64,000 nucleotides of DNA from NCBI GenBank assembly GCA_025594325.1, contig JANHCV010000004.1, positions 558,001 through 622,000 of the forward strand, read 5' to 3'. Within the stretch, counting starts at the first letter, position 1. The number at the start of each line of letters is the position of its first letter. Of the stretch, positions 1-27,016 are shown one piece after another. Made by a program: the position numbers and the translations under genes. Below the pieces are notes generated by a model. The model was given only the letters and a program-made list of their open reading frames with translations. It ran no database searches and was not told the DNA's origin. The DNA comes from Blastocladiella emersonii ATCC 22665 (taxonomy: Eukaryota; Fungi; Blastocladiomycota).

Positions 1-1062
1 CGCCGCCACAATCGCTTGCCGCGTCCCGTTCCCGAGCGCGCGGCTGAGGGCCGAGGGCATAATCGCTGCCGTCTCGCGCTGACGGAAGCTACATCCGCGC
101 GATCCGTGGTAAGAAAAGTCTTCTCAGCAGGCGCAACGGCGGCTGCCACCACGTCCCCGAGCACCTGGCTGCCCTGCGGCGGCGGGTCCACGATCTCGCG
201 CGCGTGGTAGGACGTCGGCGGGAGCCATGTTGTGCCGGCGACTCGATGCAACTGTGTGGAATAGACATCAGGGACCTGCGTCGCTGCCGAGGTGAGGCGG
301 CGATCAGGGTGGTCGGGATGTGCTCGAGCCACGGCCCGCGTCGGTCTCGCGAACGCGCCCGTGCGAGCACCGCGAGTACCCGGCGTCAGCGCCACGGGAG
401 AGGGTCGGGCACGCTCTCGCCGCAACAGTGCCGAGTGCATGTACCGATGGTGGGGCAGCGTTCGCCGGCGACGTCAGCCGCGAAACAATCTCGCGCATGC
501 GCGTTGGCTCCCCACCGCGCAGCGACGAGCGTCGGCGCGACTCACGACGAGCGCCGCAAAGCCGGGCTGCTGCTCCGCGGTCATGAAAGAGCGTCGACTG
601 CACGCTTCGCGACCGAGCGGGGTGGTCGGGCGCGTCACGTCGCGACCCTGATCGCGTTCGTGATGGACTCAAGCGACACGACCTGCGACAAGGCCCGCGA
701 GGGCTCGGCGTGCATGCCCATGGTGCCTGCGGTAGCTTGCATGAAGATACATTGCACTTTGTGTGTGTGGCAACCGGCGTTAGTGAGAGGGTCGGTTGTC
801 CCGGGGAGCGGCGGCGGGGATGAGCCACACGTCGAGTGACGCGATCCTCTCGCCCACCGCGGCTCGGCTGGCGCTGCCACCTCGTCGCGTTTCCCCTTCT
901 CGCTCAACCGCCCAATCGATATTGAAAATAAATGACGTATAATCGAGTGTATATTTCATCTGTCCTTCGCTGCGTTCCACTTCTCGTCTGCATGTCCGGT
1001 ACGGCAACTGTGCCGTGCTCGGCGGGAAGCAGCATCTCACAGTGAAAAAGGTTTGACTATAT

Positions 1063-1262
1063 CACTTAGGGGCGGTTGCTAAGTCTCGGCGCAAAGGGTC
1101 GCAAAGTGGCTTAGGGCGGCCAAAGGGTCGCTGAGGGTCGCTAAGGGAGGGGAGACTTTGCGCCGCGGGACCAAGGTACTTTGAGCGGCGAGCGGACTTT
1201 GGGGCATCGCACAGTGGCTTAGCGTGCCCGCGACAAAGTCGCTTAGTCTCACTTTGCTGAGG
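1063..1262 (+). mobile_element. CACTA/CMC-like transposon terminus with subterminal repeats
   Basis: Begins CACTTAGGGGCGGTTGCTAAG at 1063, followed by clustered short repeats (AAAGGGTCGC, AAAGTGGCTTAG, GGGTCGCTAAG, ACAGTGGCTTAG, AAAGTCGCTTAG). A CACT end plus a subterminal repeat cluster is the established layout of CMC/EnSpm ends. Confidence 0.55.
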
Positions 1263-1349
1263 GCCGGCGGCGGTCGCGGCCACTCGGTCCCGTTGTGCTG
1301 CTCATAGTCCGTTGAGCGTGGTGTAGAAACCGTCATGTACTACGATCCA

Positions 1350-2597
1350 TCACTCGATCATCTCAATCATCACCATCACCACCGTCGTCGCTCTCCTCCT
1401 CGCCACGTTACCGCGGCCGTGGCCGCCGCTGCGGCCCGTTGTGCCGGCCCCACGCTCGTCAAGCGGCTCCATGTTCGGGTCGCCTGCGCCGGCCGTGTCG
1501 AGCTCGCCGTGCTGCGGGATCGGGACGAGCGACACGATCCAGACAATCTCGTTCGGAGCGGGTGCCCTGTCGGCCGCCGGCGGTGGCCGCTGCTCGTCAG
1601 GGCACACGCACACGCGGTCGCGAAGAGCGCGGACCGGTACGACGATCGGCTGCGCGACGGGGACGTAGCACGCGCGGCCGAGGCCCGCCGTCTCCGCTCG
1701 CGCCTTGTCCTGCGCGCTGAGCCGGCGGTGGTTCACCGGGTACACGGCGATCGGCCACAGCGCAGCGAACACGACGCCGCCGAGCTCGAAAAAGTCGGAG
1801 ATGTAGCCGAAAATCGACGACATGGCCGGGTCCGCGCCCGCGTTGGGCACCACGAAGCGCGCGGAGCTCGGCAGCGCGGGGAACGCGCCGGGAACTGCAA
1901 ACACCGCGTTGGCCACCGTCATCGGGATCACGACGCGGACGACGGCGTCCTTGCTGCACTGCAGTGGAACGCCGGACCGCGTCGCCGAGTGGAACACGGA
2001 CGCGGCGGTCGCGGAAGGGCTGCGGTTGAGCACCATGCCGTCAAGTCGCAGCATGCGGATGAACCACGAGTACCCGGCCGAGGAGGTCGTAGCGGCCGAT
2101 CCATCGGGCTCGCGGAGCACCGCGCGCGCAAACGCCTTGAACGCCATGGCGAGGTGGTTGGGGAGCAGGCGCGCGCGCGTGCTCCGGTGCTCGACGAGGG
2201 CGTCGCCCGAGTCGGACCCCCGTCGACCGGGCAGCAGCGTGGCGACGCGCGACTCGGCGGCCACGGCGGCGCGGATCGTCTGGTCGAGCCGCTGCATGCG
2301 GCCGAAGCTTGACGGCTTCCAGATCCGGCATGTCGCGGCCGCCCGGCAGGCGGGACTTGATACCGCACACGGGCCACGGAGCGCCCTCGACGGATCCTCG
2401 GAGTAGAGGATCGTGACGCAGAGCTTGACTTTATTCGCGTCCTCAACCGTGTACGGCGTCCAGCAGGCGCGGCACTGCGGCAGCTTGCCGATGCATAGGC
2501 TCATGGCCGCGCGACGGCGGAAGAATGGGCGACGGTCGCGCGTCGGAAGGCGGAGCGCGGCGAGAGCCGGATGGCCGCTGGCATCGTCGCGGGTCAA
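1350..2597 (-). pseudogene. Degenerate CMC/EnSpm (Tnp2-like) transposase, C-terminal part
   Basis: 415-aa ORF with host-like GC3 bias. Motif order WTPY..LC..ILYSED..RGP / WFIRMLRLDG / SKDAVVRV / IFGYISDFF / PIVVPVRALRDRV / VWIV resembles the C-terminal region of fungal CMC transposases as I recall them. It reads toward the CACT terminus. No DDE core is recognisable. Confidence 0.45.
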
Positions 2598-3501
2598 ACG
2601 GGGCCCTGCGCTTCCCGATGCCCTGGGCGTTGTTCATGATGTCGATGCATAGTTTGCAGCAAGTGGTGGCGCATTCGGTCGACAAGTGTGTCGGCGGCGG
2701 GGGCTCGGTGGGGAGAAGCGGCTGGCCGGCGAGGTGAGCGGCGCGTCGCGTTTCGGGGCAGGGGGGTGGAGGTCGCGTCACGGGATAGTGAAGCGGGTAA
2801 ACGGCCGGCCGCGGGACTGATCAGCAACGTGTTGCGCCACTCTGTCACACGCGCCGATCTCCTCGCTGAAGCCGAACTTGCTGCCCTCCCCCTCCGCGCG
2901 CTTCTCTAAAGCGAGCACCCACTCCCATGGAACTGATTTTAACTCATTGAAATGGATTCTATTGCATCTGCCCCGCCGCTGGCGTCGTTCGCGGACGGCG
3001 GCGAGCCGGGCATGCTTACCGAGGGCCAGCCGCTTCTCCGTCGAGTTCTCATCGACCACCGACCGACATCGCCCGCGTACTACTATGTTGGTCGACTCGC
3101 CACCTGGCTTGACAATATCAAGATTCCAGACCTTCCTCTCGCTCCAAACGAAGGTGGTCCTCTTCCCGTGCATTGTACGGATACGAACGCGCCGGGCAGG
3201 GTTTACACGCGCGATCTCATCGCTCGTGTAGTTGAGAAGCGTGTCCGTACACGACGCAGCCGATCGACTAATGCAGCTCAAGTCGAGCTGTGCGATTGCG
3301 TCCTTGACTGGCTTGGCCAACCGCGCGACTTGCCGCCGCCTTCGCGCCGTGGAACTCGGACTCAGCCCACGAATGCTAGGCCGCCGATTGCAGCTCCGCT
3401 TGTGTCAGCTTCCGCGCTTCACGCTCCTCCGCCGACACCCGTTGCACCCCAATTCTCAGCTTCCTGCCCCGCTGCCGCCCCCGCCACCTCAGCTCGCGAA
3501 C

Positions 3502-5752
3502 ATGGCGCAGTTTGTCTTCGACTATTCACACGCTGGTTCCGACATGCCTTCTTCATCTTCCTTGCAAGCGCATCTGCCCGAACCACAGCTTGCGCCTCAG
3601 CCGACGCCAGGTCCGCGTATTTCGAGTTCGCACGCACCAAACTCGAGCCTCACCTACGATAAACTTCTTCAAAAGGTGGGCGAGCTCCGTCGCGAACTAG
3701 ACATGGCCAAGCGCGATCTCTCCCGGCTTCGGACCGGTGAGGCTCAGGACAAGGCAGAAATCGCATCCCTTCGTCGCGAACTTGAAGAGGCCTCTCCCAC
3801 TGGTCTCTCGCAGAAGGCAGTTGATCTTGCACGGAACTTTGACCAAATTAGCGACGAGCTTGGGATGCCACTCGCACGTCGAATTGTCGCCGTTCTGTGC
3901 AACCCCAAGCTGCTGCCGCGTGACGGCGTGCGCTTCTTGCACATCTCGAACCAGGTCGATGGGGAACTCGGGCATCAACCCAAGTTCGACGCGTCCACCC
4001 TCAACTTTTGGTCGTGCGTTGCGACCCACTGTGGGTACCGCGTTATTCGTTTCTTGCGGGGCCCTGGCAAGGGCGGTACTTTCGAAGACACCGACGGTGC
4101 AGTTCCGAACGTGCACGGGAATCTCCAGCGCATGAACCTCTTTATCCCCTCTCAGGACACTCTCCAGCGCTTGGCCAGCTGCGAACGAGTGCCTCCGTGA
4201 GGCGGCCGACCCTGCTGGTCAGCTTCCACCATCGTACGAGATCGCAGCCATCCTTGAATCGTTTACGCGTGCTTGCAACCTGGCTGTCGAAGCGGATCGC
4301 CTTGCGGGCGGGCGCCGCGTGCATGAGCCAATTCCAGGCTTGAACTCTCTCGTGTTGCTTCAGGAGTATCTCCTCTCGATTCACCACGCGTTTCACTTTG
4401 TCTTCGAGCAGCTTGAATCTCTTGTCCGCCAGATCGAGCTTGATCTGGTGGCGAAGAAGGACAAACATTCTGCCCAGAGCGAACGCGGGTGCAAGGCTGG
4501 CGAGTCTCTTGCGAATCACATTGCCTCTGAGCACCAGCAGTTGATGGCCAAGCGCTGTACAGCTCTGGAGTACGTCGTGACGGCTGATAAGTGGTACAAT
4601 GCTCGCAACTAGTCCGACCCGGATGTATTGTAGGCATCGCCGCTTTCTCGTCCGCGCCTCGACCATTCTCACTGGCTTTCACGATAGTCGAGCGCAGCTC
4701 CCGTTGAGTGCTCTTGGCCTTCGTCAGCTCGCTCTTGACGTTACAGAGTGGGTACTCGAGAACCGCGATGCTTTTGAGTCGGCCTTGGCTTTCATCACTC
4801 CCGCGGCGGGCAAACTGCTTGTCTTCATGGTCACTGACTCAAACAATACTTTCTCAAAGCCCGTCGGCTGCGTCTACGTCGCGAGCGAGGAGAAGTACAT
4901 CATCATGGCCATCTTGCGCTACCTTCGGTCTGTGTTCAAGGGCTGGGCTCCGGCTCGGGCACAACGCCCGCACCCGCGCCGGCGTACGGTCTCCACGCGC
5001 CCATCGACCTCGCCTGCGCCACGCACGGCCTCAACGCGCCCGTCCACCTGCCCGCTGCGGCTCCCGGGTTCCACACGCACGCCGCTCAACCTGCCGTCGC
5101 GGTCGGGTTCGGTGTCCCGCTCGCCCAACTCGGGCCTCTCGCCGCTCGCCCAACTCGGGCCGCTCGCCGCTGCCGGCGCCCATCAACAGGATCAGTTCCT
5201 GTAAGCTCAAGCTCAACTTCGAGATCCGCATGGCTTCGCTGTCGTGCAAGCAGCAGCCGCTGTCGCGCTCGTTCTCGAACTTGACCTCCCATCATTGTCC
5301 ATTGCCTGCATGATTTCCTCCCTGGCATATACTCAGATCTATTCACCGTCCAATCCTTCACTCCCTTGTTCGCGCTGATGGCGATTGTGATGAATCACTT
5401 GTGATGAAACGCGACGCGCCTCGCGTCGCACGTCGGCGCTTCTCACGAGCGACGATACGCGTAACCCTACCATGAATTCGCGACCACGCGTTCAAGCGCG
5501 CCGCGATCCACTTCAGCGAGAGCTCCATTGAGGGCAAGACGGACCACACGCTGATCGACAAGATCATCAAGCTGTTCCCCGAGGTGCTCGGCCCAAAGTG
5601 GAAGAAACGCGATCGACAAAACGTTCCCGAGGCGCTAAGGCTGTTCTCAATGGAGTGCATCGACAAGGTGCGCGAGCACCTGCTGCGCGACGTGCCCGCG
5701 ACGCCCCACGCGGAAGCGCGCATCTCGAGCGCGACCAAGATCGTCACGACCT
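3502..5752 (+). pseudogene. Fragmented P-element-superfamily (THAP9-like) transposase
   Basis: Pieces in different frames: coiled coil then RFLRGP..NLFIPSQDTLQR (cf. P-type LP..TL.R); AGKLLVFMVTDSNNTFSKPVGCVY (cf. A...LVFM.....W.QP.AY); DRQNVPEALRLFSMECI (cf. D.M.V..A..LFS). Interrupted by stops, frameshifts and unrelated sequence at about 4945-5460. Confidence 0.6.
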
Positions 5753-5760
5753 AAACCTAA

Positions 5761-6345
5761 ACCTCGAACAGCTCGGGCTCGCGTGGATCCACCTCGGGCT
5801 CGCGTTCATGAAGCTCGCGGTACCAACGTCGCCGCTCGACCCGGCCACGCGCTTCTCGCTCGTCCACCAATACACGCGCCAGCTGCAGGGCAACCTCGAG
5901 CTCGAGCTGCAGGTGCACCTCGCGCTGCAGATCCGCGACAAAGGCATGGCCACGAACCCGACCATCGAGTGGCTCCGCGCGCGGCTCGCGGCCGTCCGCC
6001 GCGGCGTCGAGGACTTGGCCTACCAGCTGTACCTCCGCCCGCCCAACGCTGCCGACCTGATCAAACAGCTCCATGGCGAGTTCCAGTTGATCCTCGTCTT
6101 GGCCTCGAACCCGGAGACATTCCTCGCGCAACTGCTCGACACTCACGGCCACAACGCCACGATCCACCAGCGCACCGCGGCCATGGACATGGTCAACTCA
6201 TCGCCCACCATGTTCGTCGCGCGCACGACCAAAAAGTTCCCGCCGTTCATGGACGTGCTCGAGCCCGTTTACTCGGGAAGCTACGACGTGCTGTACGAGC
6301 TCTCGCTCATCGCGATGTCGCAGGCCGAGGTCGCGCACGAGCAGG
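5761..6345 (+). pseudogene. MDN1: Isolated internal fragment of midasin (Rea1/MDN1 linker region)
   Basis: LGLAWIHLGL..KLAVP..PLDPA...NPTIEWLRARL...YLRP...L..EF...FVARTTKKFPPFMDVLEP matches the G..W..LGL...P...DPA / P.v..LR.R / RP / F..R....Y..Y.D...P pattern of midasin. About 195 codons only; no flanking midasin sequence. Confidence 0.75.
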
Positions 6346-6502
6346 TCGCTCAGCGCTGCCCGCGCTGCGCCACAAGTCGCTTGATTCCGTCGCGGTTAGT
6401 AAAACACGTGTATAATAATTGGCGACTGATAGCGTTAGGAACTGCTCCCCTCCGTGCTGGGCTTTCAACCCCACCCCTCCCCCATCCTACCCCTCACCCA
6501 GC

Positions 6503-6612
6503 CCAACTCAACCTCAACTCAACTCAACCTCAACTCAACCTCAACTCAACCTCAACTCAACCTCAACTCAACCTTAACCTGAACCCCAACTCCACCTCAA
6601 CTCCACCCAACC
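6503..6612 (+). repeat. Degenerate CTCAA/CTCAAC microsatellite
   Basis: caactcaacctcaactcaactcaacctcaac... directly visible; strongly C/A-skewed on the + strand. Confidence 0.9.
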
Positions 6613-7674
6613 CTTTGGCGCGTTGATGAAAAATTTATGAGCTGCGGTGTCGTGGATTATGCGTCGCGTACAAGAAACCGCGCGATCAGAGAGAGATCAG
6701 AGAAGCGATCAAATCAAGTAAGTAGAGTGAGTATGACGCGCGAGGCGCGTCGGTTCAGCGGAGCGTCGTGACGCGGCAGCGAGACGTGGCGGCGAGGAGG
6801 ACAAGCTCGCGAATCCTGAACGAGTTGCGGGGGTCGCGCGTGCGCGGCAAAAGCTCCCGAGCGACGTGAAGGGATTAGCGAGGATGGCGTGGAAGGAGCC
6901 CGACTCGGCCACGTTCACAGGGATCGACGCGGCCGCGACAGCCTGCTCGTTGTTCCAATGCAGGAAGTGGGAGCGGAGGACCGCGCCGCGCCCGCCGTAG
7001 TTGACCTCAAAGTTCCCGCGCGACTGCGCGAGTGCAACGGCGATGATCTCGAGCGACGTTGCGTCGTCACCCAGGGCGAGCCCGATGCGAACACCGTCCA
7101 CGATCGCGACCATGGGCGGTTTCTGCGCCGAGTTGGGTGATGCTCAAGCGCCTTCGCGGCCTTCTTTGAGGGAAGCGAGCGCCTTCTTCGAGATGGCGAC
7201 GGCGGACACTCGGTGGTCGATGAGAACTCGACGGAGAAGCGGCTGGCCCTCGGTAAGCATGCCCGGCTCGCCGCCGTCCGCGAACGACGCCAGCGGCGGG
7301 GCAGATGCAATAGAATCCATTTCAATGAGTTAAAATCAGTTCCATGGGAGTGGGTGCTCGCTTTAGAGAAGCGCGCGGAGGGGGAGGGCAGCAAGTTCGG
7401 CTTCAGCGAGGAGATCGGCGCGTGTGACAGAGTGGCGCAACACGTTGCTGATCAGTCCCGCGGCCGGCCGTTTACCCGCTTCACTATCCCGTGACGCGAC
7501 CTCCACCCCCCTGCCCCGAAACGCGACGCGCCGCTCACCTCGCCGGCCAGCCGCTTCTCCCCACCGAGCCCCCGCCGCCGACACACTTGTCGACCGAATG
7601 CGCCACCACTTGCTGCAAACTATGCATCGACATCATGAACAACGCCCAGGGCATCGGGAAGCGCAGGGCCCCGT

Positions 7675-8922
7675 TTGACCCGCGACGATGCCAGCGGCCA
7701 TCCGGCTCTCGCCGCGCTCCGCCTTCCGACGCGCGACCGTCGCCCATTCTTCCGCCGTCGCGCGGCCATGAGCCTATGCATCGGCAAGCTGCCGCAGTGC
7801 CGCGCCTGCTGGACGCCGTACACGGTTGAGGACGCGAATAAAGTCAAGCTCTGCGTCACGATCCTCTACTCCGAGGATCCGTCGAGGGCGCTCCGTGGCC
7901 CGTGTGCGGTATCAAGTCCCGCCTGCCGGGCGGCCGCGACATGCCGGATCTGGAAGCCGTCAAGCTTCGGCCGCATGCAGCGGCTCGACCAGACGATCCG
8001 CGCCGCCGTGGCCGCCGAGTCGCGCGTCGCCACGCTGCTGCCCGGTCGACGGGGGTCCGACTCGGGCGACGCCCTCGTCGAGCACCGGAGCACGCGCGCG
8101 CGCCTGCTCCCCAACCACCTCGCCATGGCGTTCAAGGCGTTTGCGCGCGCGGTGCTCCGCGAGCCCGATGGATCGGCCGCTACGACCTCCTCGGCCGGGT
8201 ACTCGTGGTTCATCCGCATGCTGCGACTTGACGGCATGGTGCTCAACCGCAGCCCTTCCGCGACCGCCGCGTCCGTGTTCCACTCGGCGACGCGGTCCGG
8301 CGTTCCACTGCAGTGCAGCAAGGACGCCGTCGTCCGCGTCGTGATCCCGATGACGGTGGCCAACGCGGTGTTTGCAGTTCCCGGCGCGTTCCCCGCGCTG
8401 CCGAGCTCCGCGCGCTTCGTGGTGCCCAACGCGGGCGCGGACCCGGCCATGTCGTCGATTTTCGGCTACATCTCCGACTTTTTCGAGCTCGGCGGCGTCG
8501 TGTTCGCTGCGCTGTGGCCGATCGCCGTGTACCCGGTGAACCACCGCCGGCTCAGCGCGCAGGACAAGGCGCGAGCGGAGACGGCGGGCCTCGGCCGCGC
8601 GTGCTACGTCCCCGTCGCGCAGCCGATCGTCGTACCGGTCCGCGCTCTTCGCGACCGCGTGTGCGTGTGCCCTGACGAGCAGCGGCCACCGCCGGCGGCC
8701 GACAGGGCACCCGCTCCGAACGAGATTGTCTGGATCGTGTCGCTCGTCCCGATCCCGCAGCACGGCGAGCTCGACACGGCCGGCGCAGGCGACCCGAACA
8801 TGGAGCCGCTTGACGAGCGTGGGGCCGGCACAACGGGCCGCAGCGGCGGCCACGGCCGCGGTAACGTGGCGAGGAGGAGAGCGACGACGGTGGTGATGGT
8901 GATGATTGAGATGATCGAGTGA
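7675..8922 (+). pseudogene. Identical mirror copy of the CMC-like transposase fragment
   Basis: Same 415-aa translation as 1350..2597(-). Confidence 0.45.
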
Positions 8923-9009
8923 TGGATCGTAGTACATGACGGTTTCTACACCACGCTCAACGGACTATGAGCAGCACAACGGGACCGAGTGGCCGCGACC
9001 GCCGCCGGC

Positions 9010-9209
9010 CCTCAGCAAAGTGAGACTAAGCGACTTTGTCGCGGGCACGCTAAGCCACTGTGCGATGCCCCAAAGTCCGCTCGCCGCTCAAAGTACCTTG
9101 GTCCCGCGGCGCAAAGTCTCCCCTCCCTTAGCGACCCTCAGCGACCCTTTGGCCGCCCTAAGCCACTTTGCGACCCTTTGCGCCGAGACTTAGCAACCGC
9201 CCCTAAGTG
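9010..9209 (-). mobile_element. Mirror copy of the CACTA/CMC-like terminus (ends ...CCCCTAAGTG at 9209)
   Basis: Reverse complement of 1063-1262. Confidence 0.55.
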
Positions 9210-11931
9210 ATATAGTCAAACCTTTTTCACTGTGAGATGCTGCTTCCCGCCGAGCACGGCACAGTTGCCGTACCGGACATGCAGACGAGAAGTGGAACGC
9301 AGCGAAGGACAGATGAAATATACACTCGATTATACGTCATTTATTTTCAATATCGATTGGGCGGTTGAGCGAGAAGGGGAAACGCGACGAGGTGGCAGCG
9401 CCAGCCGAGCCGCGGTGGGCGAGAGGATCGCGTCACTCGACGTGTGGCTCATCCCCGCCGCCGCTCCCCGGGACAACCGACCCTCTCACTAACGCCGGTT
9501 GCCACACACACAAAGTGCAATGTATCTTCATGCAAGCTACCGCAGGCACCATGGGCATGCACGCCGAGCCCTCGCGGGCCTTGTCGCAGGTCGTGTCGCT
9601 TGAGTCCATCACGAACGCGATCAGGGTCGCGACGTGACGCGCCCGACCACCCCGCTCGGTCGCGAAGCGTGCAGTCGACGCTCTTTCATGACCGCGGAGC
9701 AGCAGCCCGGCTTTGCGGCGCTCGTCGTGAGTCGCGCCGACGCTCGTCGCTGCGCGGTGGGGAGCCAACGCGCATGCGCGAGATTGTTTCGCGGCTGACG
9801 TCGCCGGCGAACGCTGCCCCACCATCGGTACATGCACTCGGCACTGTTGCGGCGAGAGCGTGCCCGACCCTCTCCCGTGGCGCTGACGCCGGGTACTCGC
9901 GGTGCTCGCACGGGCGCGTTCGCGAGACCGACGCGGGCCGTGGCTCGAGCACATCCCGACCACCCTGATCGCCGCCTCACCTCGGCAGCGACGCAGGTCC
10001 CTGATGTCTATTCCACACAGTTGCATCGAGTCGCCGGCACAACATGGCTCCCGCCGACGTCCTACCACGCGCGCGAGATCGTGGACCCGCCGCCGCAGGG
10101 CAGCCAGGTGCTCGGGGACGTGGTGGCAGCCGCCGTTGCGCCTGCTGAGAAGACTTTTCTTACCACGGATCGCGCGGATGTAGCTTCCGTCAGCGCGAGA
10201 CGGCAGCGATTATGCCCTCGGCCCTCAGCCGCGCGCTCGGGAACGGGACGCGGCAAGCGATTGTGGCGGCGCCACGCGGTCCCACGCGCCACCCCGAGCC
10301 ACGGGGCATGTGCAACGCGTCGACGCGTTGCTGCTGCCGGGGCGATCGGCAAGCACCCGCTCGTCCTTCACCCACTGATCCGCTGCCCCGAAACCATGTA
10401 GCCCGGCTCGACTTGATGAAATCACCACGGACCAACACCGGCGGCGTTCCCCGATCCGCCACCACCTCGTCGCCGTCGCTCGGGCCCGCGCCCTGCTCCA
10501 CCTGCAAACCCTGCCACCTCCGCGATGCCTCGGGCCTCTCTTGCCGCTTCCTCTCTTCGAAAGCCCCTCCTGCAACCTCCCCGAGACCTCCCGCCGCTTT
10601 CACAGGACCCGAACTCGCTCGCACTCGTCTGATCCTGCACCACTACCTCGTCACCGTCCCCAGAAACACTCCGCGCTCCACGCATGCCCTAGTCCTTGCG
10701 ACGCCTCGGGTGCCCTCCCACGGTTCCTCTCCCCTCGAGACTTCTCTCAACCTCGCCCAAGCCTTCTCCCCCGCGACCTCCCACGAACCCGCTCCCCCTC
10801 GACCTCCCGCAACCTCCCGCAGCCTCCCCGATGACCCATATATGATTTCGCCCGCGACCGTGCTCTTCCCTTGATCGTGCACCCCCGGACTCGTACCCGT
10901 CGGCCACCTCTCAAACGTCAGGGGAGCGCTCAATGCCCGCTCAGTTTTGGAGTATCGCCGCGCGAGCAACACAATGGTCCGCTCGCCCGTTTTCATCTCT
11001 GGTGCGAGACCGGGTTCCGAGGAAACCGGATCGCGCTCGTCGACTGAGCGAACGGCGGCTTCTTCGCGCCGCCACGGTACGCTGAAGTAGACTCGGCGGG
11101 TTCGGCGGGTTCGGCGGGTTTTGGGCCACCTCATGGTCATGAACCTTGCCGAGCTGCTCCGGCTGTGTACGTTGCAGCAGGTTCGAAGCTGTTTGTGCGG
11201 CTGTGTCGTGATGAATTCCGTGATTCGTCGCGGCGACCAGTTCGGTTCGCAGCGACCGGTCAGGTGGCCGGTGCGAGACACGCGGCGAGCTCTGATATTC
11301 GCGCCTCGTTCACTTCGGATCATCGTCGTACGCCAGTCAGTCCGCTGCCTCCCACCCTAACCAAATGCCGCTCGATGTCCATGCAACGGTCTCGCATGGC
11401 GAGCGGCCGGGCTACAAAAACCCCCCGCCACCTTCCCCTTCCCCCTCCCCCCTCGCTCACTCGACCCTTACTCTCTTTCGGATCGAACTCACCGAAGTAT
11501 CATACCTGACGGAACCTCTCCACGACCGACTTCTCGATCGTCCTCAAGACCCGCAAGCAGACCTCGGCATCGATCCGCTCCACCCCTCACCCGCTGTGCT
11601 CCCCGCGTCGACGACCGGGCCTTCCCCTCGCACCGCCACGAGAGCCACTTGCACACGCATCTGTGCCGTCGCCCTCATCTGCCTGCTCGCCTGCACCCGC
11701 CCGAGCGCCTCGACCCTGCACGGCTCGACCTGATCGGATCCAGACCCGCGCCGACGACCCTCATCGTCGCCGCCACCAAGTTCGACCGGCCTTCCTCTCG
11801 GCCAGTCTACTACTACTGTACGCTCTCCGATCGGATCTCTGTGATCCGCGTCCACGCTCACCAAGTTCCTCGTGTAGCGTTCGACTCGACGTTCTCGCGC
11901 GCCCACCTTTTCGTTCCGCGCCATCGTCACC

Positions 11932-14743
11932 ATGACCATCAACGAGATTCCCTCCGGCCTCGTCGGCCGCGCGTGCGAGACCTTCGAGTCGCTGTCGACC
12001 CCGCGCTACTCGGCCGAGATCGAGGACCTCATCACGGCCTTCGCGGCCATGTCGCCCCACCTGACGACGCCCTCGGTCGCTCCCGCCCCGACCGTCTCGG
12101 GCACCATCACCAAGCCCGCCGTCGTCACCGACACCATCAAGACCGCCGTCGTCGCGGCCGACACCAAGACCGCCGTCCTCACGGGCGACACCAAGACCGC
12201 CGTCCTCACGGGCGACACCAAGACCGCCGTCCTCACGGGCGACGCCAAGACCGCCGTCCTCACGGGCGACGCCAAGCCCGCCGTCCTCACGGGCGACGCC
12301 AAGCCCGCCGTCCTCACGGGCGACACCACGGCCGCCGTCGTCACCGACGCCCCCAAGCCCGCCGTCCTCGCGGGCGACGCCAAGACCGCCGTCCTCACGG
12401 GCGACGCTGACGCCCCCAAGCCCGCCGTCCTCACGGCCGACGCCCCCAAGCCTGCCGCCCTGACGGCCAAGACCACGGCCGCCGACTCCTCGGCCAATAC
12501 CACGACCATTCCGTCGACGGTTGCCACCTCGACCGAGCCCGCCTCGCCGGCTACCAGTCCCGCCACCATCTCGGCGACTACCCCCGCGCCCGCCTCGCTT
12601 CCGCCCGCCGCCGCGGCCCAGATTTTCGAGGAGCCGTACCACCGCCTGGATGCCGACCACGTCGACAACGGGCCGGACGTGCCTCTCGTTCTGGCGCACG
12701 CGGCGGCGGCGGGACCGACTGCCGGTACGGGCACGGCCCCGCTGCGCGACACCGACCAGTTTGCGCCCGCGAAGCCGGCGTTGGCCTCGATGTCGTTCGG
12801 GCCCGGTACTTCGGCCGTTTCGGGGTCGTCATCGGCCGGTTCGCGACTCGGCGAGCACAAGGTACGCTTTCGGTTCCTGTGGGCCGTGTCTCGACCACGT
12901 ACTGACCTCGATTTGTGTAGGCCCTCGACCGCATCGAGGTCCTCATCCCGTCGCCAACCCTGGCGATCTCGTGCCTGTCGCCTCATGTTCTCGGCGACCA
13001 TGTTCTCGAGGTACGCTCCGCCGAATCCGCTCACCCGGCCTTGCTGGCTAGGCGTCATGTAGCCCCTCGAGAAGCACCTGCCGCCAACCTCTCCATTCTC
13101 CCCGTCACTCGACTCAGCGGTCCTCTTTTCTACTCCTCGGGGGTCGACAGTCGAGGTACGCTTGCTGGACTCTGCGCACGAGTCTCGAGAGGGCAAACAC
13201 TGACCCTTTACGGTTAGATCGAGCAGAACCCCACGGTCGCCTGCCCTTCCTCGCCATCGGATACTCCACTCCTGCACCTCGCCCCCCTCGAGGTACGTCT
13301 TCTTGCTTTGAGGTGGTCTCGAGCGGAAGCTGACTATCGTTTCGCGCCTCGTAGGCATCCACCGCGTCTGGCACGGTGCCCGAGCAGCAGCACCAGATCC
13401 AGGCGCCGCTCGCGGCCGTCGAGCCCGAGGCCGTGACCTCGACGCTCATCAAGCCCATCGAGACCAAGGCCGTGACCTCGGCCCTGGTCCAGCCCGCCGC
13501 GCCCACCGCCGTGACCTCGGTCCTCGTCGAGACCAACGAGATCGAGGCCGTGCCCTCGGCCGTCATCCAGCCCATTGCGCACGCGGCCGTGACCTCGGTC
13601 CTCGTCCCGCCCGCCGCGCCCGAGGCTGTGACCTCGGTCCCTGTGCAGCCCGTCGAGCAGCCCGTCGAGCAGCCCGTCGAGCTCCCGGCCAAGAAGTCGC
13701 CGGTCGGTACCCGCACGCGCACGTCGGCGGCCACCCGCCGCGCCACGGCCGCGGTGCGCGAGGTCGCGCAGTCGGCGAAGCAGGTGTTCCGCAACACGGT
13801 CGGGTCCATCAAGGGCGCCGCGCGACGCGTGGTCAAGAAGGCCAAGCCGTCCGTCTCGCAGCACGGGCATGACGGCGCCGCTCATGCCGCAGCCCTCGAG
13901 CCGCAGCACGGCCAAGGTGTCGTCGGCGCCGAGCAGGAGCAGCAGCAGGTCGACGGCGACCAAGCTCACGATGATGACGACTCCGCGTCGATCAACTCCG
14001 ATTCGGACGAGCCCAAGTCCGTGCCCCACGTGCTCGCGTACGTGGGCAAGCGGGGCGACGTGCTCGCGCGGCCGGGCCGACGCGGCCCCGTGGTCGCGCG
14101 CGACGCCGAGCTTGACCAGGCCGAGGCCAACGGCCAGCTCGGTCCAGGTCGCGCCCTCGCCTACAACCACCTGGAGTACTACAAGACCCTCGTGCGCGTC
14201 AAGCACGACGTGCCGTCGAGCGAGCTCGACCTCATCGGGATGTACTTCGAAGGGCGGAACTACAAGACCGCGCCGCCCATGTCGCACGAGGGCGTGGCGC
14301 GCCTCGCCGCCCTCGTCAGCAAGCACCGCGTCACGCCCGGCGTGATCGAGCTCATGCAGCTCATGTTCAACCCGGCCGCCAGCGTGTCGGACAAGATCGA
14401 GGTGCGCGCTCTGTACGAGGAGCGGTACGCCGAGGACATGGCCACGGGCGCGGCCTCGTTCAAGGCGGCGCTGGACGCCGTCTTCGCGGAGCTGTTCGAC
14501 ACACCGGCGGTGCACACCGACGTGGTCGCGTACCTCCGGTACCTGGCGCGGCTCGAGGACGTGCTGGTCGCCAAGGCCGCGGAACGGCACGAGGACCCCG
14601 ACGTGCCGTCGCGCCAGCTCGCGGCCACGGCGCTGATGCACCTGACGACGAACGAGGTCGTCGTCGCCGACGAGCAGCGCCGCGAGGCGCTCATGGGGAT
14701 GTACTCCATGATCAAGTTCATCGGCCGCGCGCCCCGGAAGTAG
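11932..14743 (+). CDS. Multi-exon hypothetical protein with 9-aa and about 13-aa Thr/Ala/Val-rich repeats and a helical C-terminal domain
   Basis: ORFs 11932..13062 and 13376..14743 have strong GC3 bias. GT-AG introns are seen at 12862-12920 and ending at 13354; the exons between 12921 and 13354 are uncertain. No family recognised. Confidence 0.6.
12105..12475 (+). repeat. 27-bp coding minisatellite (ACCAAGACCGCCGTCCTCACGGGCGAC-like) encoding [TA]K[TP]AVLTGD repeats
   Basis: Head-to-tail 27-nt units are directly visible, about 10 or more copies, decaying at both ends. Confidence 0.92.
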
Positions 14744-15226
14744 CGGTGTGCGGGCCGTCTGTAAATAGTTTTCTGTCTGTTTGGTTGTACATATACGTCT
14801 GGTTTGCTCACCCGATCCTTGGACCTCGTTTTCTTCACGACGCAAGCAATTTGAACGTCACAATCACGGTCCTTTCGCTCGATCACGTTCATGACCGCCA
14901 AGATCGCTGAGCTCGCGGGCCAGGTCTTCACGCGCTCGTACATCTCGCCGTGTCGCGGTCGCTCGTGGTCGCGCTCGGCGATACCGCGCCTGTCGATTCG
15001 GCCGGCAAAACGGCCGCCACGCACCTGGCCATGGTCGCGCGGAAGAAGGTTGAGAGCCATGTTACGTGTAACGTCGCATACTTCGCCCACGCGCGCCATG
15101 CAGTCCTCGCGCGGGTGTAGGAGCAGCTGCGCGCTTCATGCTGAGGCTCGCGGGCTCACTCGCAGCAGTCAACCGACGTGAGGGGTACAGGAAATGATCA
15201 AATTTACACTACGCCCGCTTGCAGCA

Positions 15227-16878
15227 TTACAGGGCCGTTCCCGACCGGTTGGCCGGGTCAATCGGCTTGGCGGGCTGCGGCAGCCACCAGAAGAAGGTCT
15301 CGCGGACCGCCGAGCGGAAGCGCACGTCCATGGTGAGCAGGATCACCGGGTCGGCGATCTCGGTGATGAACTTGGAGATCATCCAGTCTAGACAGCGCTC
15401 ACACCGAGTCAGCAGTTTCTCAAGACCAACCACACCTTGCACGTGCATGCGTCGTAGAGTCCGGTGGTCCGTTCGCCTGTCGCGACAAGCTGGCCGACGA
15501 GCGCCGTCGTTGGGACCGACGTGAAGAGCGACGCGACGAGCGACGCGATCCCGCGGAGCAGGATGCGCTTCTCGATCTCGGCGTTGCGCGCCGCCTTGCT
15601 CGCCGCGTGGCTGCTGGTGATTTTGGTGCGGCCGTTGCCCGACGTCTCGGCGACCGTCGAGGAAGCCGCGGGGAGAAGGCTGCCGGACATGTTCGGGTTG
15701 TCGGCCGTGCCCGAGGCGGCGCGAAGAAGCCCGCCCGCGGAAGCGCTGTCGGCCGTGGCCGAGGCGGCGCGGAGCAGGCCGCTCATCTCTACACGTCGCA
15801 AATGTCAGTGTTCGTCGTGGTCCGAGGGGGTACCATGAGGCCGTACGCGTCTCCATACGCTCCGCGGCGGCCGTCCCCTTGTTGTTGCCGAGCCCGGGCG
15901 TGACGGGCGTGGTCGGCGAGAGCATCTGCTTGGTCGAGGCGGTGGGATCGCTCGCACTGGTTGCCTGCGTCTGAGTCGTCGTCGACTGGTTGCCGACGCT
16001 CTGCCCGGGCGCCGACTTGTCGATCTTGCGCGAAGCCTTGCGCAGAGTACGCAGGATGAGGAGGTAGACAACTGTACGAAGCGAGAGTCAGCGGGGGGAC
16101 GGACACGAGCGATACAGACCGTGCGTACTTGCGATCGTGATTGATTGAGAGCTGAGGAGGATCATGTCGACGGTGCCGAGCGCGAGGCCCATCGACGACG
16201 GGTAGCAGGTGATTCTAGCGGGAGAAAATGCACTAGTCAGCCCACGCCGAGCGCCGTAGGACCCATCGTAGAACAACGTACCCACTCCGCGAGATGACCG
16301 GGCGGTGGCCGAGCGTGTGCACGAGCATGTCGACGAGGGCGAGGAACTGCGCGCCCATGGACATGCGCGTGGCCTGCTTCCGGGTGAGCGCCTTGAAGCG
16401 GATGATCGACATGTACCGCTCGACGGCCATGTTCGTGACTAGATTTCGGCGAGTAGTGAGTGCCGACGGTCTCACGTGTCCACCGAGGCCACGTACTCGC
16501 AAAGATGGTGAGCGCGATAAAGTTGACATGGCTCATCTCAGCAAACCGACACAGGCCCTCAGACCACGCAAAGTCAGCGACGAGGGCGAGCCGGATCCCG
16601 ACGGTGCACAGGCCGTAACAGAGGTAGCCAATCGAGAGGTTCACGGACAGCTGGTTGGACGCGTTGACGAGGATCTTGTGGCGGCAGCGGTACGACGCGA
16701 TGATGATCATGGCGTTGAGGATGACGACGCCGATCGCTTGGATCAGGAGGAAGATGTTGAGCTCGCGGAACGGCATCGAGTGGTCCCAGTCGAGGGGGTC
16801 CCACGGGTCCCGCAAGTCGAACTCACGCACGTTCATGATCGTGGTCACGTTCGCGTATCGGTTGGTTGCATTTATCAT
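15227..16878 (-). CDS. Rhodopsin-like (class A) 7TM GPCR, paralog 1
   Basis: Spliced product has TM1 ILNAM, TM3 LC...AVERYMSII, ECL2 SG..CYP, TM5 VYLLILRTLRK, TM6 EIEKRILLRG...TSVP, TM7 SKFITEIADPVILLTMDVRFR (DPxxL plus helix 8). Confidence 0.85.
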
Positions 16879-17296
16879 TTTCGTTCGTCAGGGATGCATC
16901 GATGGTTCGTGGTGCAATGTGGGGCGGATGTTATCCAGTTCGTTCAGCGTTTGCATAGAGTGATGAGTGTTTTCCGAATAGTGCGGAGCGGCAATCGACA
17001 GGATGCGAGCCGAATCACCGGCGGGCTGCGCCAGTGATCCGAAGCGGAATTCGCGTTGGAGGCAGGGCGGGAGATTCCTCGCTGGCGCCATATCTCCCAC
17101 CCGTCTATTCTCATGCGTACACTTGGATTGTGATCCGTTTTCGTCGGCCGCCGCGTCCAAGTCGAGGTGCGAGACATCGGCCTCGACGCGTCGATTAATC
17201 ACGTGATGTGGGAGACACGTCCAAAGCGAAGCTCGTTTGCGCGCTCTCCGCTCACGATGTAAATAAGACGCACGAGGAGCAAAAATAGAGATCACA

Positions 17297-20200
17297 TTAC
17301 TCGCCACGAATGAACGAAAGGAACGACGACGAGGTCGACTTCTTGAGCTTTGCCACCTTCTGCTGCGGCTCGACCGTCAGGGTGCGTAGCGACGCGGGCT
17401 TCTGCGACTGGACTCGAGCAATGCCGTCGGCCGAGATGCGGTTGCGCTTCAGCGACAGCTCGACCAGCGTCCCTGGAACCGCGTCCATGAGCGCGAGCGC
17501 GCCGCCGTCCGACACGTTGTTGTTGGCGAGGTGCAGCTTGACGAGCGCGCGCGGAAGATGCGCCGCGACCGCCTGGACGCCCACGTCGCTGATGCTGTTC
17601 GCAAACAGCCCGAGCGAGGTGAGCGAGTTCGGGAGCATATCCGCGATCTTCTCGGCCCCCGCGTCGCTGAGCGCGTTGCAGCTGAGGTCGAGCGAGATGA
17701 GCGCGGGCGTCATGCCCGCTGCGAGCGCGGCCGCGCCGGCGGGACCAATCTCGTTGTACGACAGGTACAGCTTGAGGAGCGAGCGCGGCAGCGCGGGCGC
17801 CAGCTTGACCATACCGCCGGTCCCGATCTGGTTCGTCGTGAGGCCGAGCAGCTGCAGGTTCGGCGGCATGTTGTCCGCGAGCGCCCGCGCGCCGTTGTTG
17901 CCGATACGGTTTTGCCCGAGGTCGAGCTCCAGCAGCGACGCGGGGAGGGCCTTGGCGAGTGCCTGCATGCCGGCGAACCCGATGCCGTTCGTGAAGAGAT
18001 CGAGCGACCGCAGCGAACGCGGGAGTCCTTGGGCGAGAGCCACGGCGCCGTTGTCACCAAGCGCGTTTCGGCCAAGCGAGAGCCGATGAAGCGAGTCGGG
18101 AAGCGCAGCGCTCAACGCGATCGCGCCCTCGGGGCCGCCCTCGTTGTAACTGAGGTCGAGGACGAGCAACGTCGGCGGCAGTTTGGCGGCGATCGCGTGC
18201 ATGCCGTGCGGACCGAGCTTGTTGTTGCTCAGGTACAGCTCCTGGAGGCACTCGCCGAGCTTGGTCGCCGAAACGCGGATCCCGTTTCCCGTAATCTGGT
18301 TGTACGACAAGTCGAGGATCGTGAGCAGCGGCGGCAGCTTGGCCGCGATGGCCTCGGCTCCACCATCGCCAAGTTCGTTTGCGCGGAGCCGGAGCTCGCA
18401 CAGCTGCGGCGGGAAGCGGGCAGCGAAAGCGAGAGCACCGGCGTCACCGATCGCGTTCTTGCTGGCATCGAGGATCTGGAGCGTGTCGGGAAGAAGCCGC
18501 GAGAGCACCATGGCGCCGTCCTGGCCGAGACCGCAGTTGGCGATCTTCAGCTCAGTGACGAACTGAAGCGGGTGCGAGAATGCCCGCCCGAGAACGGCAA
18601 GTCCAGCTTTCGTGACGGTCAGACCGGTGAGGTCGAGGGACTGCATCGAGCCGTTGGCCAGCTCGAGGCGGGCGTCCCACACGCGTCGATCGCCCTCGAC
18701 ATCCCACAAAGCCGCGAGATCCTACGCGCACGCCAGGTGTGAGAAACCAACGAGGTCAGCGCGCAAGGGAACCAAGAACGCACCGCGAAGAAGTGCTCCG
18801 TGGCCAGGTCAGAGGAAGGAGCAGCATCAGGTGAATCCACGGACGCGGCAGGAGAGAAGGGCAAGACTGGCGGCGGCGGAAGCATGGTGGCCGCGTCCAC
18901 GGGGAAAGCCGATCCAATCGGCTGACTAGTGCCGGGTGTTGGCATCCGATCGACGGCTGGATACGGTGCATCGGGCTGTGCTGGATGGCGTTAGTGAGGG
19001 AGTGCATGTACAAGAAGTAAATTGTCGTACGCTGATGGTCATCGAGCCGAGGTGATGGTCGAGTTGATCACCCGCGCCGCCAAGCGGAACCGGGGAAGCG
19101 GACACGCTCGAAGAATCACGATTGACAAGTACAGCAAGCTCGCCAGCGATTTCAGTAAACTTGGGCCGCGCAAAAGGCCGGTCAGCCCAGCACCGTTCGA
19201 CAAGCGCCCAGAGCTCGCCCGAAAAGCTCGGCGCGTCCACTGGCGCCGCGGGCCGGCGGCCCTCGCGGATCCAGCCCATGATGATCAAGGCCTCGACCTT
19301 CTCGCCGTCAAAGGGAATCTTACCCGCGACGACCTCGTAGCAGACCATAGCGTACGCGAACACGTCCGGCGTGAGGTGCCAAGTGGAGCCCGGGATCGTG
19401 CGCTCGGGGGCGAGCCAGCGCGTGTTCCCGACCTTGCCCTCCTCGAACGTCTCCAATCGGCCGGTCCCGTTGGCGCCGATCGTGCGCGCGAGGCCAAAGT
19501 CGGCGACGACCGCGATCCCAGACCGGTGGACAAGCACGTTCACCCCGCGCAGATCCCCGTGCGCAATGTTCATGCTGTGGAGGTGCGCCATGCCGCGCGC
19601 CGTGTCGAGGAGGAGCCGGAGGTGCTCGCTCGGCCGGCCGATCGCGTACGTGGCGAGGTCGCCGCCCTCCATGAGCGGCATGACAAGGAACGGCGCGTCC
19701 GAGTTGAGCGAGTAGCCGAGCAGGTCGACGACGTTGGGGTGGCGCAGGCCGCCCAGGATATGGGCTTCGGCGCGGACCGCGGTGATGAAGTCTTTCGCGG
19801 CGAGCGACGCGTGCGCGCCCGCGAGCGGGTCGAGGTACTTGACGGCGACGTCGGTGCTCGAACTGCGCAGGGTCGCCTTGACGACCTTGCCGAACGAGCC
19901 TTTGCCGAGAAGCTGAGTGGAGATTTCGAGGTCGTCGGGCGAGAACTCGCGCAGGCCGACCACGAGCGGGCCCGAGGCTTGAGCTGTCGCGGCGACGTGA
20001 GCCGCGGGAGGCTGCTGGGCGGTTTGCTGCTGCTGCGCAAGAAGCCGAGTAAGCGCAGCGTTCAAGTTGGCACAGGCGGGAGCAAGTCGAGTCTTGACGA
20101 CGTCCAGCTCCTGCGCGAGCTGGGAGCTCAGCGCGACCGGAGCTTCGTGCAAGGAAGCAAGAAGCTGAGTCGTCAGCCGCATGGCCTGGCCGGTGTGCCG

Positions 20201-20428
20201 ACAAGCCAGTCGGACATGTTGCGCAAGTTCCGGGTGAAGAGTAGCGCCGTCAGCCGAAGCTGGCGCGCGAGAAAGCGAGTCCAAGAGCGACTGAGCGGTG
20301 TCAAGCGCTGCGCGGGCCGGACCCTCGACCTGCTCGCGAACCGCGTCTGGCGCCCGGTCGAGAAGCTCGCCAAGCTGGTCGGCAAATTGCCGCAAGTTAG
20401 CGGTTGGGCCTTCTGCCATGGCGTTCAT
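17297..20428 (-). CDS. Cytosolic protein: N-terminal helical domain, TKL-type protein kinase, RNI-like leucine-rich repeats
   Basis: Kinase motifs GKGSFG, VAVK, HGDLRGVN, DFG, APE. About 14 28-aa LRRs (L..LDL..N.IG..G). Joined in frame by two phase-0 GT-AG introns (...MTIS|PDAPY...HFFA|DLAALW...). Confidence 0.85.
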
Positions 20429-20804
20429 TAGCTTGCATTCGAGTCCGTGGTTGAGAGAGCGAGGACCGAGGCGCATGGGCAGCTTCCCTTGCGGTGCCAA
20501 GTGTTCCAGCGAGCCGCTCGCACATCCACCGCACATCCACCGCAGCGCCGAACGTGGCAGCGAGCATCCCCTCTGGCGTCGTCCCGCCGTCGCCGTGACC
20601 GCCCGGTCGTCCCAAGGGGGGCAGCGAGCGCGAGGGCCAAGGCGAGGGACGCGACGTTCAATCAGGTGATGGTCGGCATGATCGCCACCAGCGCGAGCTC
20701 GCCGCCTTCGATGTTCCTCTCTCTCGTCCCATCACCCCATGCAAATCTGGTCACCTCTGACTACATACAACCTCATGAACAAACCTTCTCCGATGCGACT
20801 TTAT

Positions 20805-24842: not shown

Positions 24843-27016
24843 TCAAATGTAGTTGGCGTAGGGCTGGTCGCGCTTGCGGCGGCGCATGCAGCACCCCTCG
24901 GCGAACCAGGTGCGCCACTCGTAGAGGATCGACATGCGTGCGCCGAAGATGATGAAGAGGACGATGCCGGGGGTGGACACGACGAGGTCCGAGAAGACCA
25001 TGAGCGGGAACGAGGGCACATCGGGGGAGATGCGGTTGGCGCACTCGTCCTGGCCGTTGTTGGCGGAGATGCACGAGACCCACGACTTGAACCAGGCCTC
25101 GGTGCCGTTGATCTTGAGCTTCTTCATCTCGAAGAAGTAGAAGACCCAGAAGATCATGAACGAGACGATCAGCTGCATGGCGAGCAGCAGCGCGCGCCAC
25201 TGCACCTTGACGGCCTTGACCACGTGCTTGCCCTTGGCCGCGCCCGACGACCCGCCCGACTGCTGCGGGCCCGACGCCATGGACTGGCTGTACGTCTGCC
25301 CGTTGGACGAGTACCCGTAGTACGGGTCCTTGCCCGACCGGCTACCCGTCTGCGAGTTGACCTGCGACGTCTCGACCGACACGGACTCGCGGATCGAGGC
25401 CCGCGCGATCGAGTAGAAGGTGACGAGGTGGATGACGAAGGCGGGGCCGACGATGGCGAGCAGCGGGTAGAAGAAGAGGGCGTTGGACCAGTCGGCCGAC
25501 ACGAGGCAGGTGGCGCCGCTGTTGAACTCGACGGCGCCCGCGAGGTACGCCCAGATGGTGAAGACGAGCGGCCAGACCCAGCACACGAGCGAGGTGACGT
25601 GGAAGTGGCGCTCGAGGAAGTTGGACCGCCACACGGCCGACAGGTGCAGGTTCATGACGAGGTAGCAGGCCCAGATGATGGCGAGGTGCGCAAAGAACAT
25701 GATGAAGGTGCCCTGGACCGCGCACAGCACGTTGTTGTTCATCTTGGCCTGGATGATCGGGCTCGACACGGCCGTGGCCGCGTCCCACGCGCACTGGACG
25801 CGCTTGGGCGCGGGGAACCCGAACCAGATGTTGGCCATCCAGAAGGTCTGGGCGAGCGAGAAGAAGAGCACGATGATGGCCGGGTGCTTGCGCTTGTTGG
25901 GGAGGAACAGGTACGAGAGCAGCACGAAGAGGGCGAGCACCGACGACACGCCGCGCACGTAGACGGCGCCCATGTTGAGGGCGTCGATCTTGCCCTTGGG
26001 GTAGAAGGCGTTGATGGCGGGGCACGGGATGCAGCACTGGCCGAAACACGTGCCGCCCGTCGCGGTACCGCGGTTCGTCTCCGGGTTGAGCTCGCCGCGC
26101 GGGTGCGGGAGCAGCGGCTCGGGGCACGCGCGGTTCTCGACGAGCGACCCGAGCGGCGCGGCCGGCCGCACGCACTTGTCGGTGCGGTCCGTGGCGGCGC
26201 GCACCGTGGGGGTGTCGCACTGCGGGATCATGTTGGTGCGGTTGGCGAGGAAGAAGGGCGTGGTGCAGTAGGCCGTCACATCCGTGCACACGCTGACGCA
26301 GGGCCGCGACTGCGTGACCGAGGACCCGGTGCCCTCGCACTTGAAGTAGCGCGACGTGCACGCCCACCGCTGGAAGGCGTCGGCGCACTTGGGGTAGAAG
26401 CGCAGCAGCGCGTTCATCTCCGGCTCGGGCAGCGCCGCCGCCGCGAAGGCCTTCTCGATGGCCTCGATGGGCAGCGACGAGCTGATGGTGTAGTTGACGA
26501 ACTTGCTGCACGCGATGCCCTTGTACGGGATGCATTCTACGATGCCGTGGGTGGTTCGAGGGTGAGTACGTTGACGATGATCGAGGACGTGATGCATGGC
26601 GGCTGGGTCCGCATGGGTCCTCCCCCGCACTCGGCACGCCGTGAATTCGACACGCGCGAGCCGATGACCAAGTGCGGGGAAGTCGCCGCCGAGTGGGGCC
26701 GCGCGACCCCAGCGCCTCCTCGCACACAGCGTTGCAAACGCAGAGTGCGAACGTCATGCAGGGCGAGGTCCGCAGGTGGGGCCACCGCCACGGCGCACAC
26801 CACTCGAGCGAGGGCAAGCGACGAAAGAAACGTACGGCCAGCGGGCGCAGTCGTCGTATTACTCGCCGAGCCGGCACCGGGTGCTGGCGCAGGGGCGGGT
26901 GTTGGCGCGGGTGTCGTCTGGGCGACGACGGGCGACGAGGTCGCGGCGAGGAGCAGGGCCACGAGCGCGAGCGCAAGGGCGAGGGCGAGTGCCCGTGGTG
27001 CCGGGATGGAGGGCAT
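24843..27016 (-). CDS. Frizzled/Smoothened-like (class F) GPCR
   Basis: Signal peptide; Cys-rich Fz domain (CIPYKGIAC..C..AFQRWAC..C..RPC..VC..C); CP..L...C..C..PCP linker; 7 TM segments including LSYLFLP..RKHP and CAVQG.F. One intron at 26537-26835. Confidence 0.9.

Follow-up and report, generated by a model that had tools for sequence, protein, structure and literature searches.

A 35.8-kb palindrome of host genes in Blastocladiella emersonii, probably a recent inverted segmental duplication formed in break repair

Introduction

How does a fungal chromosome come to carry the same block of genes twice, in opposite orientations, around a few kilobases of other DNA? The question is raised by contig JANHCV010000004.1 (C16 in our numbering) of the Blastocladiella emersonii ATCC 22665 assembly, on which a long palindrome is found. 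We analysed a 64,000-nt stretch of this contig (the window, C16:558001-622000; coordinates given without a contig refer to it) and compared it with the whole genome of 21 contigs and 32.65 Mb. A first reading of the window made from its letters, here called the original prediction, had described identical arms at 1-3062 and 7210-10271 with a sharp inner boundary, a palindrome of at least 10.3 kb and a unique mosaic spacer at 3063-7209, and had pointed out that foldback elements such as Galileo have kb-long terminal inverted repeats around a P-type transposase. It had listed several origins side by side, among them a very recent inverted duplication, a foldback element of the Galileo kind, and arms kept identical by conversion. 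Our analysis indicates that the structure is larger than the window can show, that it is probably real, and that it probably came about when host DNA was duplicated in inverted orientation, not long ago in evolutionary terms, during the repair of a break by fold-back or template switching. The class, inverted segmental duplication or palindrome, is a known one and taken alone represents an ordinary rearrangement; the value of this locus is that of a cleanly resolved example, with four junctions mapped to the base and none of them with homology.

Two 15.8-kb arms surround a single-copy spacer

The window edge cuts the left arm. Inside the window, a repeat search reproduced the predicted arms and their sharp inner boundary: the two segments are 100% complementary across 3,062 nt, with 4,147 nt in between. 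After 18 kb of upstream DNA had been added, an ungapped mirror comparison was run outward from the window start; the match goes on for a further 12,765 bases and then falls abruptly to about 25%, the random level. This locates the outer ends, which the original prediction had proposed to seek in upstream sequence, at C16:545236 and window 23036 (Table 1), and enlarges the palindrome to 35,801 bp for the two arms and the spacer. Arm to arm there are 2 mismatches and 0 indels in 15,827 bp, an identity of 99.987%. Genome-wide, the innermost 3,062 bp of the arm occur in full length at these two places only. Two inverted copies are present at the locus; their length, identity and unique spacer place them among palindromes with arms of 8-10 kb or more and >99% identity, and the non-duplicated DNA between them falls within the range of about 0.8-70 kb that holds for human fold-back inverted duplications (PMC3907307). 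Such geometry is far beyond chance.

Could the inverted second copy be an artefact of assembly, absent from the cell? The assembly was built from ~186x PacBio HiFi data (mean read 10.5 kb) with the La Jolla Assembler, purge_dups and Pilon, and purging took it from 247 to 21 contigs (PMC9730499). Contigs C2 and C11 begin with arrays of AAACCT, the telomere motif of the published assembly (PMC9730499). An error might be suspected because of the purging, because the arms, at 15.8 kb, exceed the mean read, and because a tandem repeat, a place where polishing with short reads can go wrong, holds one of the arm differences. However, the 4.1-kb spacer with both of its junctions fits one read of mean length, and the locus lies 545 kb inside a 2.5-Mb contig, with four distinct junctions to unique DNA. 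Palindromic reads caused by a missing adapter carry no such spacer, lone chimeric reads should not persist into an assembly of this coverage, and several independent palindromes with different spacers exist in the genome (see below). Altogether, we regard an artefact as unlikely.

The left outer junction cuts one copy of a membrane-protein gene

The right outer boundary, 23036/23037, falls inside an 826-codon membrane-protein gene. In this gene the G+C content at third codon positions is 0.90 in the 83 codons outside the arm vs 0.92-0.95 inside it. The left flank, read in the same frame, has no codon-position bias (0.60/0.58/0.58), and a TAG stop codon in frame stands right at the junction; the left-arm copy of the gene is truncated at its 5' end, without the first 83 codons. 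As the coding signal is continuous across the right boundary and absent on the left, the right arm appears to retain its original surroundings on the outer side. The rearrangement breakpoint at which the gene copy lost its 5' part would be the left outer junction. The last 1.9 kb of the left flank are unique in the genome.

These boundaries also bear on the age of the structure. If the palindrome were older and its arms had been homogenised by recurrent gene conversion, an identity of 99.987% would be uninformative on age. The identity and the sizes of arms and spacer fit the class of mammalian sex-chromosome palindromes (PMC3723533, PMC8327919), and conversion is probably active in this genome: in an inverted pair on C5, 6.2 kb at 99.9% abuts 1.25 kb at 89%, like the outcome of partial homogenisation. 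Yet diverged homology is absent beyond both boundaries and in the spacer. A gapped word-7 search found no inverted homology between the outer flanks, so there are no decayed margins, and no inverted self-homology inside the spacer. Over the whole 15.8 kb neither an indel nor a transposon insertion confined to one arm is present, and both arm differences lie mid-arm, away from the arm edges. An old palindrome kept uniform by conversion is therefore a rather improbable alternative. We attribute the near-identity mainly to youth, and consider arm-to-arm conversion and flipping of the spacer to be expected consequences of the structure.

The spacer is composed of debris, and a mobile element is cut at its right end

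The spacer is present in the genome as one full-length copy. Its left part (3063-4933) is DNA unique in the genome and its right 2.3 kb consist of dispersed pieces of at least four sequences, which agrees with the unique mosaic that had been predicted. The spacer holds an old relic of the family A type (Table 1), whose protein blocks are 30-39% identical to family A reading frames and which includes an open reading frame (ORF) at 3232-4200 that has no Pfam domain. A younger fragment of family A, a fragment of a midasin gene and part of a family C element follow. The frame on C20 that lies behind the midasin fragment matches yeast midasin structures with E about 1e-41, and one short piece of the spacer is also present on C8.

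The partial family C copy is informative with respect to the right inner junction. Family C is a mobile element of ~1.75 kb, both termini of which are shared by copies at four or more loci that differ in their flanks. The copy in the window stops at 7209, exactly at the start of the right arm, while intact copies run on for ~1 kb. Microhomology at 7209/7210 is 0 bp, as the next base of the intact copies is already unlike that of the arm. Even with the density of fragment boundaries in this debris-rich region, about one per 500 bp, the chance of a base-exact coincidence with an older truncation is small, and we therefore take 7209/7210 to be the second new junction. The left flank has no homology to the continuation of family C, a result compatible with a deletion. 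The element (further copies are L016 1044-2795 on C15, L023, L024 and L026) has a 17-19-nt subterminal inverted repeat; the family has a 279-codon ORF with no Pfam domain and is unclassified, and its copy L023 is flanked by a direct repeat of roughly 20 bp.

ORFs that begin in the arms run into the spacer across both inner junctions. Since long identical inverted arms recombine and flip the DNA that they enclose, the locus might be pictured as a programmed invertible switch, in which arm recombination turns the spacer around to alter expression. The spacer, however, contains transposon and gene debris only, with no recognisable domain. Inspection showed neither a recombinase nor a regulatory feature, and a search of arms, spacer and junctions gave no tRNA genes and no Rfam RNAs. 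A switch of this kind is extremely improbable.

Two of the sequence families in the spacer were followed elsewhere in the genome. Shorter copies of part of the midasin fragment, at 72-74%, lie 7-9 kb from the ends of C2, C6, C21 and C3, and another such copy is found 37 kb from the start of C17. The fragment therefore belongs to a subtelomeric repeat. The elements of family A (L012-L015, on C5, C8, C16 and C17) have several reading frames, none with a Pfam match. Their products show a coiled-coil region and then a conserved block, with weak language-model leads to clusters of P-element transposase helix-turn-helix domains, and family A may be a very divergent P-like family.

The hallmarks of a foldback transposon are absent

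Foldback transposons, such as Drosophila FB and Galileo of the P superfamily, have element-specific, repetitive arms of ~1 kb, occur in many copies and are flanked by target-site duplications. In Galileo the arms enclose a P-type transposase. The palindrome described here shares with them the long inverted arms around a middle segment, but none of their other hallmarks. To be a foldback or composite transposon, it would need to have either the arms as giant terminal inverted repeats or an inverted pair of the dispersed element D as its ends, and the spacer would have to encode the P-type transposase that moved it. Two copies of element D in inverted orientation do lie near the centre. In addition, ORF 3232-4200 gives weak language-model leads (0.82-0.86, below the reliability level) to clusters with P-element-transposase domains, and a marginal tblastn match at 5578-5733 (E 0.004, 54 residues) was obtained with a P-like transposase of this genome, whose full-length sequence itself narrowly misses the Pfam cut-off (22.5 vs 24.6 bits). 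Against this, the identity between the arms does not stop at element D but continues across host genes for another 13 kb and ends inside a gene, the element D copies are themselves truncated, and their composite-transposon look is part of the larger mirror symmetry. The original prediction had suggested a search for a target-site duplication and for other copies; both came out negative, as no direct repeat is common to the bases outside the two outer ends and the inner 3 kb of the arm have no further full-length copy. The P-type transposase expected between the arms was likewise not detected as a domain: none of 20 ORFs of the spacer has a Pfam match, PF12017 is absent genome-wide, and the matches to PF21787 lie on other contigs, which leaves the sub-threshold language-model lead and the marginal tblastn match. 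A Galileo-like element thus fails in every feature tested and is very improbable, whereas the very recent inverted duplication listed beside it is the origin that we favour.

How the palindrome may have formed

An inverted duplication by break repair could have proceeded as follows. A 15.8-kb gene block would have been copied in reverse orientation beside itself, and the 4.1 kb of single-copy transposon debris left between the copies would correspond to the fold-back loop or to the jump of a template switch. The new junctions would be the left outer one, which cuts the copy of the membrane-protein gene, and the inner one at 7209/7210, which cuts family C. The inverted copy would further have had to be joined, again bluntly, to the left flank, probably with loss of the remaining part of family C and of what followed it. 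As both new junctions are blunt, the joins would have been made by end-joining or by homology-free template switching. Judged from the sequence, the net effect would be to double the dosage of about six signalling and membrane genes and to leave one further gene copy truncated at its 5' end.

Several observations weigh against this scheme. Inverted microhomology at the junction of spacer and inversion is 0 bp. The position is interstitial, and plain fold-back followed by breakage-fusion-bridge needs a second rejoining. Transposon-protein homology hardly separates the candidates for the ancestral inner junction: over 3062/3063 it reaches 34.3 bits when the real arm is used and 33.1 bits with an in silico join of left flank and spacer, a gain of 1.2 bits. 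Finally, all transposon pieces in the region are truncated, and family C may in principle have been cut before the duplication took place. A search for seed homology for a fold-back gave a 9/11 inverted match near the inner junctions, a level that is reached by 37% of random pairs.

Comparison with known systems

Origin-dependent inverted-repeat amplification in yeast produces a direct-inverted-direct triplication bounded by short inverted repeats. If the break-repair origin is correct, the B. emersonii locus is similar in that an interstitial inverted copy arose from a replication-based template switch, but there are no short repeats at its junctions. It also has two copies and not three, and an inverted triplication by this route was rejected on that ground.

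In human fold-back inverted duplications the single-copy spacer measures between 766 and 70,466 bp (median 3,428 bp), and most of the sequenced junctions show 2-8 bp of microhomology (PMC3907307). The present structure is like these in its inverted copies, its single-copy spacer of a few kb (here 4,147 bp) and its breakpoints in interspersed repeats, where those of the human cases often lie (PMC3907307), and also in that the inverted copy is closed at its far end by another junction. It is unlike them in having 0 bp of microhomology, in being small (15.8 kb) and interstitial, and in having no adjacent terminal deletion, telomere or translocation. Unlike the human constitutional cases, it is fixed in the reference genome of a fungus.

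The palindromes of mammalian sex chromosomes (human Y P1-P8 and those of the primate X) likewise have arms of >10 kb with >99.9% identity, a unique spacer and genes in the arms, but their great age, their conservation across species and their upkeep by conversion have been demonstrated (PMC3723533, PMC8327919), and the B. emersonii palindrome differs from them in its ordinary chromosome context and its cargo of signalling genes. In Candida albicans, long inverted repeats and breakage-fusion-bridge events provide a parallel in which fungal inverted repeats and fold-back reshape gene dosage; there, pre-existing repeats drive a transient, stepwise amplification under drug selection (PMC7371428), in contrast to the single stable two-copy palindrome found here, whose junctions lack a pre-existing repeat.

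Further inverted pairs in the genome

Five other inverted pairs are listed in Table 1. They were chosen from transposon matches that came in symmetric pairs of equal score, so that their high identity is biased and uninformative on the overall age distribution, and as several of them extend past the DNA examined, their true sizes are larger. Because further inverted pairs at 99.90-100% exist in the same genome, the process that makes palindromes appears to recur. In the C5 pair, an inverted stretch of 89% (C5:1128793-1130000 / 1247130-1248377) directly adjoins the 99.9% stretch.

We tentatively suggest, as a possibility that is open to considerable doubt, that the palindrome stems from a process still at work throughout the B. 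emersonii genome, one that makes near-identical, gene-bearing palindromes of 6-65 kb on ordinary chromosomes, perhaps keeps them uniform, and is a main route by which sensory and signalling families expand. In form, such palindromes would resemble those of mammalian sex chromosomes. Palindromes seem to be made unusually often in this early-diverging fungus; the genome paper makes no mention of palindromes or inverted repeats (PMC9730499). If the abundance is true, B. emersonii would be a natural system for the origin and persistence of palindromes and for gene-family growth outside sex chromosomes. Users of the assembly are affected through ambiguous spacer orientation, multi-mapping reads and inflated gene counts. 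Lack of hairpin-opening nucleases was considered as a cause of many palindromes but found no support, as the genome has both Mre11 (150 bits) and, with a score above the cut-off, a Sae2/CtIP motif (25 bits).

Genes and dispersed sequences carried in the arms

Arm genes are described by their right-arm coordinates; the left arm holds their mirror copies.

Table 1. Coordinates of the palindrome, its contents and other inverted pairs of the genome (window positions unless a contig is named)
Feature	Position	Strand	Remarks
Left arm	-12764..3062 (C16:545236-561062); visible part 1..3062		15,827 bp; mirrors 7210-23036
Right arm	7210..23036 (C16:565210-581036)		15,827 bp; sharp outer end 23036/23037
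Spacer	3063..7209		4,147 bp; transposon and gene debris; one full-length copy in genome
Arm difference 1	13505; left position C16:554767		Right ACC (Thr), left GCC (Ala); 13-residue repeat, within 39-nt array
Arm difference 2	17105; left position C16:551167		A/G, between ORFs
Old diverged family-A-type relic	3063..4982	+	Three collinear protein blocks, ~3063-3221, 3628-4176 and 4719-4982
Younger family A fragment, internally deleted	4934..5676 (4934-5373 + 5479-5676)	+	84-99% to copies on C5, C8, C16 and C17
Midasin gene fragment	5670..6392	+	0.72 kb, 87.5% identical to C20:839450-840186
Family C mobile element, partial	6418..7209	-	792 bp; true terminus at 6418; cut mid-body at 7209
Dispersed element D, left-arm copy	1037..2759		Mirror at 7513-9235
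Dispersed element D, right-arm copy	7513..9235
Two Thr/Ala/Val-rich tandem-repeat ORFs	11932..14743	+	27-nt and 39-nt units
Multi-exon membrane protein gene, G-protein-coupled-receptor-like paralogue	15227..16878	-	67-70% DNA paralogue of weakly 7tm_1-like genes
Leucine-rich-repeat protein gene, LRR_6 type	17297..18709	-	PF13516, E 1.8e-57; duplicated
Protein kinase gene, tyrosine-kinase-like class	18926..20536	-	PF07714, E 2e-44; duplicated
Multi-pass membrane protein gene, 826 codons	20805..23285	-	Spans right outer boundary; first 83 codons outside arm
C3 pair	C3:76001-112884		Arms at least 17.3 kb, 99.98%, gap 2.2 kb
C1 pair	C1:335493-375000		Arms at least 11.2 kb, 99.97%, gap 17 kb
C18 pair	C18:983943-991364 + 1050908-1058329		7.4 kb, 100%, gap about 60 kb
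C5 pair	C5:1122364-1128546 + 1248640-1254822		6.2 kb, 99.9%, gap about 120 kb
C3 second pair	C3:448458-458000 + 514456-524000		At least 9.5 kb, 99.96%, gap at most 56 kb

The membrane protein, kinase and LRR_6 genes (17297-23285, minus strand) stand head to tail with gaps of only 216-268 bp, and the trio may be a functional cluster or one mis-split gene. The 826-residue membrane protein could not be named: it has no Pfam family and no relatives in a word search, and the Atlas gave unnamed or weak leads only. One Atlas lead (0.91) likens the membrane part of the trio to N-terminal regions of adenylyl cyclases. Directly outside the right arm, at 24843-26630 on the minus strand, a 595-residue receptor-like protein is encoded, with weak matches to the Fz domain and to Dictyostelium cyclic AMP receptors, both below the Pfam cut-offs. 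Paralogues of the gene at 15227-16878 occur in the left flank (one) and at window 37-41 kb (the others), and the left-flank paralogue scores 27.9 bits against PF00001, below the cut-off. The in-frame tandem arrays of the Thr/Ala/Val-rich products span 12056-12484 and 13371-13682, in two neighbouring ORFs.

The arm copies of element D are truncated at the 3' end relative to copies on C15, C20 and C5 that are 96-98% identical. An isolated stretch of 35 bp (2776-2810 in the left arm, 7462-7496 in the right) lies 17 bp past the truncated end of element D and is 97% identical to a site on C8 (L018 1713-1747). That site is 152 bp from a 133-bp piece that is likewise present in the spacer, at 6287-6419.

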